Below, piece after piece: positions 10,101 through 40,498 of a DNA stretch of 52,935 nt (within the stretch, counting starts at the first letter, position 1; each line of letters starts with the position of its first letter). The stretch is from Octopus bimaculoides. Its lineage: Eukaryota. Position numbers and translations under genes: made by a program. Under the pieces are notes generated by a model. It did no database searches. It had not been told where the DNA came from and worked only from the letters and a program-made list of their open reading frames with translations. Location: assembly GCF_001194135.2 (NCBI RefSeq), contig NC_069000.1, forward strand, positions 41,334,221-41,387,155. The letters run 5' to 3'.

Positions 10101-10591
10101 TCAGTATTTACTGCATACAACACAGCTTAATTCTTGGCCATGGGCATACGGTGGACATGGCAATGAACCACAAATAGCTTGAACGAAAAACAATGATGCT
10201 GCATCCTCGTTTCTGAAACCTGCTGGATCAGCTTCCGGTGCGTGGTCCACACACACATATTCATGCCTGCCCCTCTGGTCATTGTTGGCTGTCATTACAT
10301 AACCTGAATACTCAATTGTCCAGCCAGGGTAACAGCGTGCCCTGGCTGGTAGCATCATAACAACAGCAGGTTGTCGTGTCAAACAGACAGCACACGGAAC
10401 GTTATGATTTGAAAGTGCTTTAGCGTTAGCGAAAGAAAACATATTAGCAATTGGTATCTCATATTCGCATCCATATATCTGTGCAGCCACTTCAACGTCT
10501 GTAGTATAATTGGCCCAAGTCGGATCATTTGGTAGACATAACAAATTACTTCCACCACCAGTCTGGTCAGAGAATTGTCCACCAACCACAC
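10101..10591 (-). CDS. Gene A exon 4 (491 nt, bulk of the C4/NC1-like domain to the stop codon)
   Basis: Lies inside ORF 10101..10769; acceptor TTTCTAG|GT GTG GTT GGT; ends CVVCSKY*. Confidence 0.95.
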
Positions 10592-12605
10592 CTAGAAATA
10601 GTAAGAATATGTTTTTATCAAATAAATAAGATATAATGTAACGTAGAACGTTAAAAAGCAGAAACAGTGATTGAAAGTAATCGTAAATCACGTAATCGCC
10701 CCCCAATCTTATGTATGAGAAATTAACTGAAAAGAGGAAGAAATGAATATTTCGTAATGAAAATAGCAAAATTATGGAATATCGATATAGTACGGACTAA
10801 TATACGAATGTTGAATATAATAAGGACTATAAAGCAAACCTGAATTCATGCGAAATATAACAGGGTTACTATCATAAATTGGTGAAGGTGCAATGGCCCA
10901 GTGGTTAGAGCAGCGGACTCGCGGTCATAGGATTGCGGTTTCGATTCCCAGATCGGGCGTTGTGAGTGTTTATTGAGCGAAAACACCTAAAGTTCCACGA
11001 GGCTCCGGCAGGGGATGGTGGCGAACCCTGCTGTACTCTATCACCACAACTTTCTCTCACTCTTTCTTCCTGTTTCTGTTGTGCCTGTAATTCAAAATGT
11101 CAGCCTTGTCACACTGTGTCACGCTGAATATCCCCGAGAACTACGTTAAGGGTAGACGTGTCTGTGGAGTGCTCAGCCACTTGCACGTTAATTTCACGAG
11201 CAGGCTGTTCCGTTGATCGGATCAACTGGAACCCTCGACGTCGTAAGCGACGGAGTGCCAACAACTATCATAAATTGGCATTCTGGGATGTCCTACATGC
11301 TAAGATATCCCTATATGTTAGGAAAATACGAGCATGGAGAATCGAATGCGATTTGTACTAGGGAAAAGAGTCTTTAATCATGTTATTTCCAATTGATTTT
11401 TTATGTATTATTTGACAGAACACATCCCCATTGGGAATAGTATAAGCAGTATATCATCGATAAGGGCTTCGTTAGTTTGAGTTTACAGTAGTTAATTTAA
11501 TTGGTCGCCAAATCATACGCATGATCGAGTGTGACTATGAACAAAGACGTTGCCACTATACATATAACACCAAACGTTATGAAACTAGTTGTAATATGAT
11601 AATGCGGGATTATGGTAAATAATATTCAGATTGAATTTTTGTCGTTCTTCAAATTTATTTAGAGAGATGTACGAAATTTATATATACACATACTCACAGA
11701 TATATACATATATGTATACTTAGAAAGAGCAATAATGAGAGAGACGTTTGGGTATATGGGATATGTATGTCACTATGATTAAACCTTGGGAGAGGCATTA
11801 TGCCGGTAATAAACACACGCACTGGTTCAGTCCTTTATTAATTTAAATTGTTTTGTTAAATTATTTCATTGCACTCTTGCAATCTCTTCAGTAACTTGTC
11901 TCTCCACTTCCATTTATTTTGAATGTATGATCTGGCGTTGTTTTGGCGTTGTTTTGAAACTGTTCGGTATGAGCATGTGAGTGTGTGCAAGCTCGTATGT
12001 GTGCACGCTCATATGTGTGCACGCACTTATGTGTTCGTGCTTATATGTAAGTATGTGCGTCCATATGTGTGTTTGTAACAATTTCATTTATATCAGATCA
12101 GATAGAGACTTTTTTTTTTAAATTTAAATTTAAATTTACTTATTTACGTTCATATTCCGCATCATATGTGTGAACAACACATGCAACCATGGGCAATTGT
12201 AAGGCCCTCATCTACGTGTATTTGGTGTTCAAAATTGGTTGCGTTTCAGAAAAGAAACAAGCGTAATAAACGAAGAATTTTCCCTCATAATCCGTATAAA
12301 CTGAGATATTGGTAGCTTACTCTTTTTCCGCAGTACGGCTTTTCTCTTGGCGTATGCTAAGCCATAGCAGAAACTGCAAATTCCTAAGTTGCGATATTTA
12401 ATGAAAAGAATACTTTACGTTTGTTCCAGCCGTTTTCTTCTGTGTCGCTTTATCTTTTATTTTCGTACTTACACAAACACCTTGTCTTTCATTATTGTGA
12501 ATTCGTAAACTTAATGGCAGATTGCTGTTCTTTTTCTCTTTCTTTCTATATCCCTACACATCGTAATATTCTCTCTCTCTCTCTATTTCTTTCTCTCTCT
12601 CTATT

Positions 12606-12650
<45 letters not shown>

Positions 12651-12983
12651 GTCTCAATCTCTCCCTTTCGTTTCTTCTCTTTTCTGTCAAACACTTCTGC
12701 AGCTTTCAGGCTGCTGCCTCCTTGACGCCCAGGTCACATTCCTAGGGCCCCCACCCCAACTAAACATCACAAGCATAGACCTCTTTCTGTAGCAAATTCA
12801 AGGCAGCTGTATTTTACAACTAAAACTTAACCTTACAGTTCTATATTTAAGAGATGAGGAATTATGTACATTGTTTACATTTGACGGATATTTGCCCTCA
12901 TCTTGTTCGTTGTTAACACAACGTTTCGGCTGATATACCCTCCAACCTTCATCCGAGTTCGATTCCAGGCAGTGACCTGGATG

Positions 12984-13042
<59 letters not shown>

Positions 13043-38450: not shown

Positions 38451-38493
<43 letters not shown>

Positions 38494-40186
38494 TTGGAAA
38501 TTATTCGTGGCGTTCGATCATATAATAATATAAATAATATAGATATATGCATATATGCATACACATATGTACATACCTACATATAGATGTATATACACGT
38601 GCATATATGGGTAGAAGACGTCAAAAAACGTGAACAAAATGAAAAACGGGAACATGAAAAAACAAAATCATGGAAAACGAACTGTTTTTCGAACAATGAA
38701 AGAAACAAATAGAGAGACGGGACAGGCAACATAAAGAACATTGCCTTCATCAGTTGTTCCTTGTTTTATCTACTCCGCGTTTCGAACACTTGGGACAAGA
38801 CGCGTCATCGTTAAAACAGTCGTTCTCGCAAAGCAAATTAAATAATATTTGGGATTTGCTGAGGGTTAAAGTGATAACAAAAACAGGACAGTACGAACAA
38901 AACAGTAAAAACAAACGGTAAGGGCTGTTAAGCCATAACGATGTGAAGTGGTGAGCGCTGGAAAAACGAGCTTTGACAGGGGACAGGCAAAAATGTGTGT
39001 TGTCTCTTGTAGTGCAAGGAGAAGAATGACAGGTGACAGGCAAAAATATGTGTTATCTCTTGTAGTGCAAGGAGAAGAATGAAAGATAGCCGCTGATCAC
39101 GTGTGAGCAACGGGAGAGTCACTAAAGTGACGGAGGGTATCAGTGACCATCAGCATTGCTAGAAACAAGAATAAAATTAGAATCAAAATAACTCTTAGCC
39201 ACTTTCCTAACGGCTGATAAGGAAGAAAAGTCCCTTCCTACAACAAGCGAGATGGAGTCGTATCAGTGCTAATTTCAGATTTAATCAATCTTCATCAGTG
39301 ACCTATTACTCCGTCACCGAGGGTTAAAAATCCTAAATCACCTTGTCATAATACATACAAACACACATACATATACACATGGGTAAGCACATAAATGCAA
39401 AACAAGGTGGAAAAAAATAATATAAATATACAAAGAAACGCATACACGGACACGTATATATATATANNNNNNNNNNNNNNNNNNNNNNNNNNNNNNNNNN
39501 NNNNNNNNNNNNNNNNNNNNNNNNNNNNNNNNNNNNNNNNNNNNNNNNNNNNNNNNNNNNNNNNNNNNNNNNNNNNNNNNNNNNNNNNNNNNNNNNNNNN
39601 NNNNNNNNNNNNNNNNNNNNNNNNNNNNNNNNNNNNNNNNNNNNNNNNNNNNNNNNNNNNNNNNNNNNNNNNNNNNNNNNNNNNNNNNNNNNNNNNNNNN
39701 NNNNNNNNNNNNNNNNNNNNNNNNNNNNNNNNNNNNNNNNNNNNNNNNNNNNNNNNNNNNNNNNNNNNNNNNNNNNNNNNNNNNNNNNNNNNNNNNNNNN
39801 NNNNNNNNNNNNNNNNNNNNNNNNNNNNNNNNNNNNNNNNNNNNNNNNNNNNNNNNNNNNNNNNNNNNNNNNNNNNNNNNNNNNNNNNNNNNNNNNNNNN
39901 NNNNNNNNNNNNNNNNNNNNNNNNNNNNNNNNNNNNNNNNNNNNNNNNNNNNNNNNNNNNNNNNNNNNNNNNNNNNNNNNNNNNNNNNNNNNNNNNNNNN
40001 NNNNNNNNNNNNNNNNNNNNNNNNNNNNNNNNNNNNNNNNNNNNNNNNNNNNNNNNNNNNNNNNNNNNNNNNNNNNNNNNNNNNNNNNNNNNNCTCTGAT
40101 CCAATATATCTATCTATCTATTGGCATTAGTAAAATTTACACATATACTTATTTATAAAATGTGTTTATATGAATGTGTGTCTGTA

Positions 40187-40230
<44 letters not shown>

Positions 40231-40498
40231 TGTCTGTCTGTGCGTGTGTGTGTGTCAATGCATGCGAGCTTGTGTATATTAATACATACTCTATACAGAC
40301 CAAAGGCAGGAAGATAAAAGTCACATACAAATACATACAAATTTCTCTACTCACTTGTTCCGATTTCTCTTCCATTTTCCTAATCCTTGAATCTTGGTGA
40401 AGAATCGTTATGGTGAGAATGAGAAATAATCCGAAAGCTACGAGAGAAGAAATGGAAAAACGTTGCGAAACGTTCCTGGAAAACTGTGAGAAATCCAT
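31952..40498 (-). CDS. Gene B (spliced, 4 exons, 253 aa): paralog of gene A, short-chain collagen C4-like domain protein without triple helix
   Basis: join(40498-40355, 37229-37178, 35750-35676, 32442-31952) = 762 nt, open frame, GT-AG introns; about 81% amino-acid identity to gene A by manual alignment. Confidence 0.9.
34240..34995 (+). mobile_element. Degenerate mariner transposase fossil in gene B intron 3
   Basis: HDNARPH, HPPYSSDL, YYHLFR motifs (ORF 34701..34955). Confidence 0.85.
35676..35750 (-). CDS. Gene B exon 3 ([26 protein letters not shown])
   Basis: CAG acceptor, GTTAGT donor, 75 nt. Confidence 0.92.
36041..36499 (-). mobile_element. SINE family A, diverged full-length copy
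   Basis: Reverse complement matches head, core, microsatellite and tail. Confidence 0.8.
37178..37229 (-). CDS. Gene B exon 2 ([17 protein letters not shown])
   Basis: CAG acceptor, GTAAG donor, 52 nt as in gene A. Confidence 0.85.
37570..37700 (-). mobile_element. SINE family A 3' fragment
   Basis: CCATGCTGGGGCACCGCC…GAATCGACCCCAG. Confidence 0.7.
37770..37900 (+). mobile_element. Mariner transposase N-terminal HTH fragment
   Basis: AKFSVKLSKNITDIYEMLQAVYG…SRLYVFRW resembles the Mos1-type HTH. Confidence 0.65.
38286..38455 (-). mobile_element. SINE family A 3' half
   Basis: CTTGTTTCAGTCATTTGA…CAAATCAACCCCAG. Confidence 0.8.
40355..40498 (-). CDS. Gene B exon 1 (MDFSQ...KSEQ)
   Basis: 48 codons, donor CAA|GTGAGT, hydrophobic segment [20 protein letters not shown]. 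Confidence 0.88.

Follow-up and report, generated by a model that had tools for sequence, protein, structure and literature searches.

Two tandem octopus genes that probably encode membrane-anchored, collagen-less relatives of short-chain collagen C4

The stretch of Octopus bimaculoides DNA analysed here (the window) comprises 52,935 nucleotides of chromosome CM046620.1 (GCA_001194135.2), at about 41.334-41.387 Mb. It carries on its minus strand two neighbouring genes, A and B. We consider these to be, probably, two retained tandem duplicates within an Octopus-specific array, encoding collagen-less relatives of the spongin short-chain collagen (SSCC)-related family. Each protein would have a short conserved Arg-containing tail (residues 1-13), a single uncharged hydrophobic helix that is most likely an uncleaved signal anchor of type II (residues 14-35), a stalk whose dibasic site, K54-K55 ahead of SLDD, is conserved in the family (residues 36-69), and a disulfide-stabilised extracellular domain made of two homologous halves (residues 70-253). 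The domain is best explained as an NC1-like fold of spongin type that is distantly related to the two-lobed NC1 of collagen IV. A proprotein-convertase-type cut at the dibasic site would release the NC1-like ectodomain, about 198 aa long, in soluble form, a step that we propose only tentatively. As to role, the direction indicated is that of a self-associating or ligand-type module of the extracellular matrix or cell surface, not a structural collagen.

The gene models were built from two minus-strand open reading frames (ORFs), 10101-10769 and 31952-32467, both terminating in ...SCVVCSKY, and the other exons were placed by comparing the two gene regions with tblastn and blastn. An earlier sequence-only reading of the window had described two intact four-exon genes with identical exon lengths (144/52/75/491 nt) and phases, and this proved exact (Table 1). 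Each coding sequence (CDS) has 762 nt (253 codons and a stop), the intron phases are 0, 1 and 1, and all introns of both genes are GT...AG. With the splice sites verified, the translations match RefSeq proteins at 100% (XP_014780687.1 for A and XP_014780685.1 for B), and RefSeq names both products "short-chain collagen C4." Both genes are already annotated RefSeq models; the remark that they are hidden from the ORF track amounts to their being spliced and to nothing further.

The A and B proteins are 81.0% identical (48 of 253 residues differ), in agreement with the earlier estimate of about 81%, and the CDS are 87.2% identical, with 28, 16 and 53 nucleotide differences at codon positions 1, 2 and 3. 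The introns, which had been called far more diverged, are indeed largely unalignable, with blastn blocks of 65-78% identity. That description stops at the coding end, however, where the 530 nt 3′ of the stop (9571-10100 and 31452-31951, minus strand) are still ~86% identical, near the CDS value. This near-CDS conservation suggests a constrained 3′ untranslated region (3′UTR). There are eleven runs of N in the whole window, three of them within the gene-pair region. These gaps touch neither an exon nor a reading frame of A or B, and because no exon adjoins a gap, no reading frame needs continuity across one.

The domain has ten cysteines, invariant in alignments of 81 and of 31 sequences, and the HSQ motif is absent from the A and B proteins. 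Spongin NC1 is described in PMC5395295 as sharing seven cysteines with collagen IV, as having three that are peculiar to spongins, and as lacking HSQ. The ten invariant cysteines and missing HSQ therefore fit that description, the seven-cysteine correspondence being a count and not a one-to-one mapping. A homology search returned 557 matches, among them octopod paralogues and bivalve, annelid, brachiopod, amphioxus, crinoid and sea-anemone proteins. The matches in Branchiostoma, Anneissia, Lingula, Exaiptasia and Actinia include proteins with PF01391 collagen repeats (E 1e-45 to 1e-54, 72-91% of the query covered), which in many amphioxus, crinoid and sea-anemone proteins lie directly upstream of the domain. 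The earlier assignment to the spongin/C4-like family is upheld by this homology to Gly-X-Y-bearing members and by a predicted fold that matches only collagen IV NC1.

Residues 70-161 align with residues 162-253 over 82 columns (hhalign probability 96.8%, E 2.1e-10), and both halves close with C-x-V-C (PCAVC at 156-160, SCVVC at 246-250), as do the subdomains of collagen IV NC1 (RCAVCE, RCQVCM). The family profile also aligns with the NC1 of human COL4A1 (hhalign E 5e-5 to 8e-5, probability 61-68%; the COL4A1 sequence used is a 100% match to PDB), the match being confined to the subdomain junction CAVC...CPxGW..GY. AlphaFold2 (AF2) modelled the whole protein with a mean predicted local distance difference test score (pLDDT) of 86.6. 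The domain was also modelled alone, since the N-terminal helix of the whole-protein model led to low template-modelling (TM) scores; it reached a pLDDT of 83.9 and a predicted TM-score (pTM) of 0.82. In Foldseek searches of the PDB, collagen IV NC1 chains alone fill the first 41 places for the whole protein and the first 34 for the domain, with E values as low as 3e-6 and a probability of 1.00; after these, E rises to 0.02-0.5 with unrelated folds. The link to collagen IV thus comes from architecture and predicted fold, not from a sequence-family match. One N-glycosylation sequon, N118, is present. An eleventh cysteine, C132 (in IYGCEYE; approximately 10466-10468 and 32317-32319, minus strand), occurs in A, B and their Octopus sinensis orthologues, whereas the rest of the family alignment shows S, A, T, M, V, G or I at this position. 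It makes the ectodomain cysteine count odd, and C132 may stay unpaired as a free thiol or link two molecules by a disulfide.

As the sequence-only reading had stated, no collagen repeat could be found. Neither protein has a Gly-X-Y run of three or more, and a six-frame scan of the whole window and of the gap-free orthologous O. sinensis loci (L002 and L003) found no run of five or more. The only runs of four are a poly-G beside a gap and, outside the genes, two matches attributable to chance. There is only the PGPG/PGLG with which exon 3 opens.

The collagen-less state is common in the family. The 81 aligned homologues show four architectures, with an anchor or a signal peptide, each with or without collagen. 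An anchor without collagen is found in all the octopods and in the bivalves Sinanodonta and Ruditapes; an anchor with collagen is found in amphioxus, a crinoid and Actinia. Searching the domain profile against 1.84 billion representative proteins gave 4,481 clusters at E≤1e-3 and 1,205 at E≤1e-30. Collagen runs are missing from 56 of the 74 complete single-domain representatives among the best 150 clusters, and 12 of the 74 have an internal anchor without collagen, in a sample skewed towards the query profile. The novelty of the pair had therefore been overstated: both genes are in RefSeq, and collagen-less members, including anchored bivalve ones, are the majority of the sampled family. For a 49%-identical relative, a full-length CDS for anchor, stalk and domain runs uninterrupted through a 1104-nt Logan contig, which we regard as transcript-like support for the architecture. 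In the literature searched, which did not include the founding paper, the family is still a short helix plus NC1 and a collagen-less anchored subgroup is not described; searches with the family name and octopus, or with "spongin-like," returned annotation-level mentions only. Some database proteins hold many copies of the domain in tandem (P0129, 3949 aa, nine copies; P0130, 3827 aa, six copies) and could be real multi-domain proteins or fused models of tandem arrays elsewhere.

The N-terminal parts foreseen by the sequence-only reading, an Arg-containing tail, an anchor and a stalk, were all recovered. The tail holds R8 and R13, and its motif SRNISQR.SI is conserved from Octopus to Argonauta. 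The 22 residues that follow are uncharged, with a Kyte-Doolittle mean of 2.3 in the best 19-residue window. AF2 predicts a single continuous helix over residues 16-51, and the stalk has ~35 residues. The conserved tail and the ratio of nonsynonymous to synonymous substitution rates (dN/dS) of 0.28 in exon 1 are unlike the n-regions of signal peptides and so favour an uncleaved signal anchor. Type II topology, with the N-terminus inside, follows because the cysteine-rich domain must be extracellular. Given the hydrophobicity, the conserved tail and the continuous predicted helix, we find type II anchoring plausible and judge it the likely state of both proteins.

A dibasic site, KK or KR, precedes SLDD in every octopod. 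At this position bivalves have RERRRR-AVDD, RTKR-AIDD or KRKKR-EADE, and Lingula has RAKR-QV. These bivalve and Lingula sites have the canonical proprotein-convertase form (R-x-K/R-R), suggesting release of the ectodomain. With the site conserved in the stalk, shedding is plausible for A and B too, although they have only KK. The ink proteome of O. vulgaris includes a peptide from a family member (PMC10142993), as would be expected if at least one relative has a soluble form outside the cell.

Both copies have been kept under purifying selection since the duplication. The sequence-only reading had proposed such selection on the pair, with dN/dS as the check, and between A and B the ratio is 0.25-0.31 by three methods (0.27 for the N-terminal part, 0.30 for the domain). 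The O. sinensis orthologues, 253 aa each, are 95.7% identical to A (dN/dS 0.17) and 93.7% identical to B (dN/dS 0.16). In a neighbour-joining tree A and B form sister clades, each holding its own O. sinensis orthologue, and the duplication is thus older than the split between O. bimaculoides and O. sinensis. Gene conversion as a source of the A/B similarity was considered and rejected: it is unneeded, as the paralogue dS (0.32) exceeds the orthologue dS (0.12-0.19) and A and B each cluster with their own orthologue.

Several observations weigh against this interpretation, and four alternatives have to be set beside it. Even at E up to 10, neither protein matched any Pfam family, PF01413 included. 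Against PDB sequences, phmmer and the 81-sequence family hidden Markov model gave chance matches only (E >0.6). In the Foldseek matches to NC1, the TM-score normalised to the domain (TMq) is 0.45-0.52 and the root-mean-square deviation (rmsd) ~8.6 Å, both for a predicted structure. The NC1 link is therefore carried by a short hhalign match and a predicted structure with a TM-score of ~0.5, and the domain could instead be an unrelated cysteine-rich fold that resembles NC1 only superficially or through a fault of the prediction. We think this highly improbable: the Foldseek matches are exclusively collagen IV NC1 chains until E jumps by several orders, the architecture of two subdomains that each end in CxVC is held in common, and hhalign aligns the same inter-subdomain junction. 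PF01413 also misses the NC1 of sponge spongins, as noted independently (PMC12749355), and the literature concludes likewise for the family (PMC5395295). The same paper reports modelling which suggests that spongin NC1 is without the domain-swap hairpin used in collagen IV trimerisation, which makes oligomerisation of A and B uncertain. A further point is that the two intron-1 gaps, one in each gene, are still unread in this assembly. If they held Gly-X-Y exons, A and B would be true short-chain collagens; many relatives have a collagen segment immediately upstream of the domain, and PGPG/PGLG at the start of exon 3 resembles the vestige of one. This possibility, which the sequence-only reading had named as decisive against itself, was examined before the others, and its likelihood is close to nil. 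The two O. sinensis loci contain no N and have the same four exons, matching in all lengths and splice sites, with no Gly-X-Y coding capacity; at the position of the gene A gap only ~250 nt separate the collinear blocks on either side. PF01391 is missing from all of the ~30 octopod paralogues listed, which come from independent assemblies of four species, and the collagen segment of the relatives would fall in intron 2, which is fully read here and has no such sequence. Concealed collagen exons are thus very unlikely, if short of formal exclusion for this assembly.

The anchor has its own counter-evidence. The charges that flank it (+2/-1 before, about +4/-4 after) have no clear positive-inside pattern, and the hydrophobic segment could be a long cleavable signal peptide, in which case the proteins would be secreted and never membrane-anchored. 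Many family members open with a classical N-terminal signal peptide, a family peptide is present in secreted ink, and small residues (T29, T31) lie within the segment. We nevertheless hold a signal peptide to be unlikely: the stretch starts only at residue 14, its ~20-22 uncharged residues exceed typical h-regions, and a polar c-region with a -3/-1 motif is missing after it. The tail in front of it is conserved among octopod families in a way that n-regions are not, and the predicted helix continues through residue 51. As for release from an uncleaved anchor, furin would cut poorly at a KK that lacks Arg at P4, and the case for shedding of A and B is weaker than for their bivalve relatives. 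Finally, transcript support was sought in the clusters of A and B, and the Logan members of the gene B cluster proved to be genomic ORF calls; two Logan members (P0126, P0127) were rejected as cDNA because both start "MPFLGVVGG," an intron read-through. Direct expression evidence for A or B was not obtained, and the array includes one last-exon copy that has decayed and an exon 1 without partners. One or both copies could then be unexpressed decaying duplicates that are intact only through recent duplication. This is very doubtful given the age of the duplication, an intact 253-aa orthologue of each copy at dN/dS 0.16-0.17, ten invariant cysteines, splice sites that are all intact, and polyadenylation signals conserved in position. 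The interpretation of A and B as constrained, anchored and collagen-less SSCC-related proteins is the one that we retain.

The closest known system is the SSCC-related family itself, whose type member is short-chain collagen C4 of Ephydatia muelleri (CAS4_EPHMU, P18503; Aouacheria et al. 2006, as cited in PMC5395295). A and B share with it a C-terminal domain of ~185 aa with ten conserved cysteines and no HSQ, and their occurrence fits its taxonomic range, the non-ecdysozoan invertebrates. The tie to the type protein P18503 is indirect and comes from the name that RefSeq and UniRef give, "short-chain collagen C4(-like)." The family is defined by a short collagen helix plus NC1, whereas A and B have no collagenous segment, a probable internal hydrophobic anchor in place of the N-terminal signal peptide, a dibasic site in the stalk and the extra eleventh cysteine. 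Collagen IV NC1 (PF01413; PDB 1LI1, 1M3D, 5NAX) likewise has two homologous subdomains that each end in C-x-V-C, is the sole PDB match of the predicted fold, and matches at the junction CAVC...CPxGW..GY by hhalign. In contrast to it, the A/B domain has ten instead of twelve conserved cysteines, no HSQ and no PF01413 match, is ~40 residues shorter, has no triple helix to nucleate where collagen IV has a long interrupted one, and reaches TM-scores of only ~0.5. The stand-alone NC1 gene of ctenophores (Fidler et al. 2017, PMC5395295) resembles A and B in having an NC1-type domain without a collagen helix. It is of collagen IV type with HSQ, however, and the available part of that paper describes no membrane anchor for it and reports spongins to be absent from Ctenophora.

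Shed type II proteins, among them the membrane collagens XIII, XVII, XXIII and XXV and ectodysplasin-A, are released by proprotein convertases and consist of a short cytoplasmic tail, a signal anchor, a stalk with a basic site and a C-terminal self-associating, beta-rich domain. The predicted order of parts in A and B is the same. The C-terminal domain of these proteins is not homologous to that of A and B, and the octopus site is KK as against R-x-K/R-R. The amphioxus, crinoid and sea-anemone relatives combine an anchor and collagen with the same domain as A and B.

The larger lineage-specific array suggested by the sequence-only reading was borne out. At least six last-exon copies lie on the same strand as the pair within ~130 kb, and the expansion is Octopus-specific and later than the split from Argonauta. 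The last-exon remnant between A and B (Table 1) has an in-frame TGA, an internal deletion of ~120 nt and truncation at both ends, and points to gene birth and death within the array. A third exon 1 is represented upstream of gene B by its 3′ part (..LHLDARTRKMEEKSPA). Partner exons 2-4 were searched for in 40499-51271 and none was detectable. This exon could be a duplicate left without partners, could serve gene B as an alternative first exon, or could be part of a gene with its other exons in gaps. We rejected its assignment as exon 1 of LOC106877462 (P0007): that gene lies at 41410025-41452618, outside the window, and one of 16 residues differs. Beyond the window are LOC106877462 at 41.410-41.453 Mb and P0006 at 41.457-41.466 Mb, and the heavily gapped interval between holds two further last-exon copies and an inverted exon 1. 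The RefSeq model of LOC106877462 spans 42.6 kb in a region that is about one third gaps, and it may be a merger of several array members.

O. sinensis has many paralogues on one chromosome, plus local duplications of its own. Exon 1 of its A orthologue occurs twice with identical peptide (L002 3145-3288 and 10001-10144), and its B orthologue is a head-to-head inverted pair, XP_029647388.1/XP_029647387.1 (L003 2412-2555, minus strand, and 10001-10144, plus strand). Either the array is being rearranged separately in each of the two species, or the duplications were created by the O. sinensis assembly. In the window, copies of a short interspersed repeat, 70-83% identical, are present in the introns and flanks of A and B, and long CA/TC/GT microsatellites border most of the assembly gaps. 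Two ORFs resembling the C-terminal part of a reverse transcriptase of long interspersed nuclear elements (LINEs) were recognised by eye only, one 3′ of gene A (1868-2506, plus strand, ...HLRWAGHVQHME) and the other within gene A intron 1 (19632-20024, minus strand).

Table 1. Features of the gene pair and of the surrounding array. Positions are those of the window unless stated otherwise.
Feature	Position	Strand	Description
Gene A	10101-23937	-	four exons, coding span
Gene A exon 1	23794-23937	-	144 nt; aa 1-48: start codon, cytoplasmic-type tail, predicted hydrophobic anchor, stalk start; GTGAGT donor
Gene A exon 2	17549-17600	-	52 nt; stalk segment with dibasic KK (54-55); CAG acceptor, GTAAGA donor
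Gene A exon 3	15511-15585	-	75 nt; start of NC1-like domain; CAG acceptor, GTTAGT donor
Gene A exon 4	10101-10591	-	491 nt including stop; remainder of NC1-like domain; TAG acceptor
Putative 3′UTR of gene A	9821-10100	-	to first AATAAA/ATTAAA-type signal, 275 nt past stop
Gene B	31952-40498	-	four exons, coding span
Gene B exon 1	40355-40498	-	144 nt
Gene B exon 2	37178-37229	-	52 nt
Gene B exon 3	35676-35750	-	75 nt
Gene B exon 4	31952-32442	-	491 nt including stop
Putative 3′UTR of gene B	31684-31951	-	to first polyadenylation-type signal, 263 nt past stop
Assembly gap	22770-22984		gene A intron 1, 810 nt from exon 1
Assembly gap	29786-30354		spacer separating genes A and B
Assembly gap	39467-40093		gene B intron 1, 262 nt from exon 1
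Decayed last-exon remnant	27839-28038	-	between A and B; 86-89% nt identity to gene B exon 4
Third exon 1, 3′ part	51272-51321	-	intact GTAAGT donor; 5′ part lost in gap 51322-52190
Interspersed repeat copies	9015-9182, 15968-16140, 18744-18939, 22570-22754, 36167-36499, 38428-38946, 41127-41392	both	
Family exons in locus L004 (CM046620.1 41400025-41462618)	20694-20837, 26157-26231, 28316-28429, 29333-29389, 34566-35063 (locus positions)		

These results overturn nothing, as the genes are in RefSeq and the architecture is common; what is new is the explicit reading of a widespread variant. The name "short-chain collagen" misleads for many family members, as some three quarters of the clusters sampled have no helix, and the NC1-like module evidently works alone, without collagen. 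Whether NC1 was an independent module before it joined collagen has been posed as an open question (PMC5395295; bioRxiv 10.1101/2021.10.08.463732), and A, B and their kin bear on it. They also offer small, tractable proteins for probing the binding partners of spongin-type NC1. A more far-reaching reading, which we regard as a speculative and rather unlikely extension by analogy, is that the array encodes precursors tethered to the membrane, from which a cut at the dibasic site frees soluble NC1-like ligands for signalling or recognition. If it were true, the products would be, for example, integrin- or matrix-binding factors like NC1-derived matricryptins or shed type II ligands, and spongin-type NC1 would function autonomously of collagen and have diversified in cephalopods. 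For octopus biology, the pair adds a lineage-specific tandem expansion, under selection, of proteins that are secreted or sit at the surface; one of their relatives occurs in ink.

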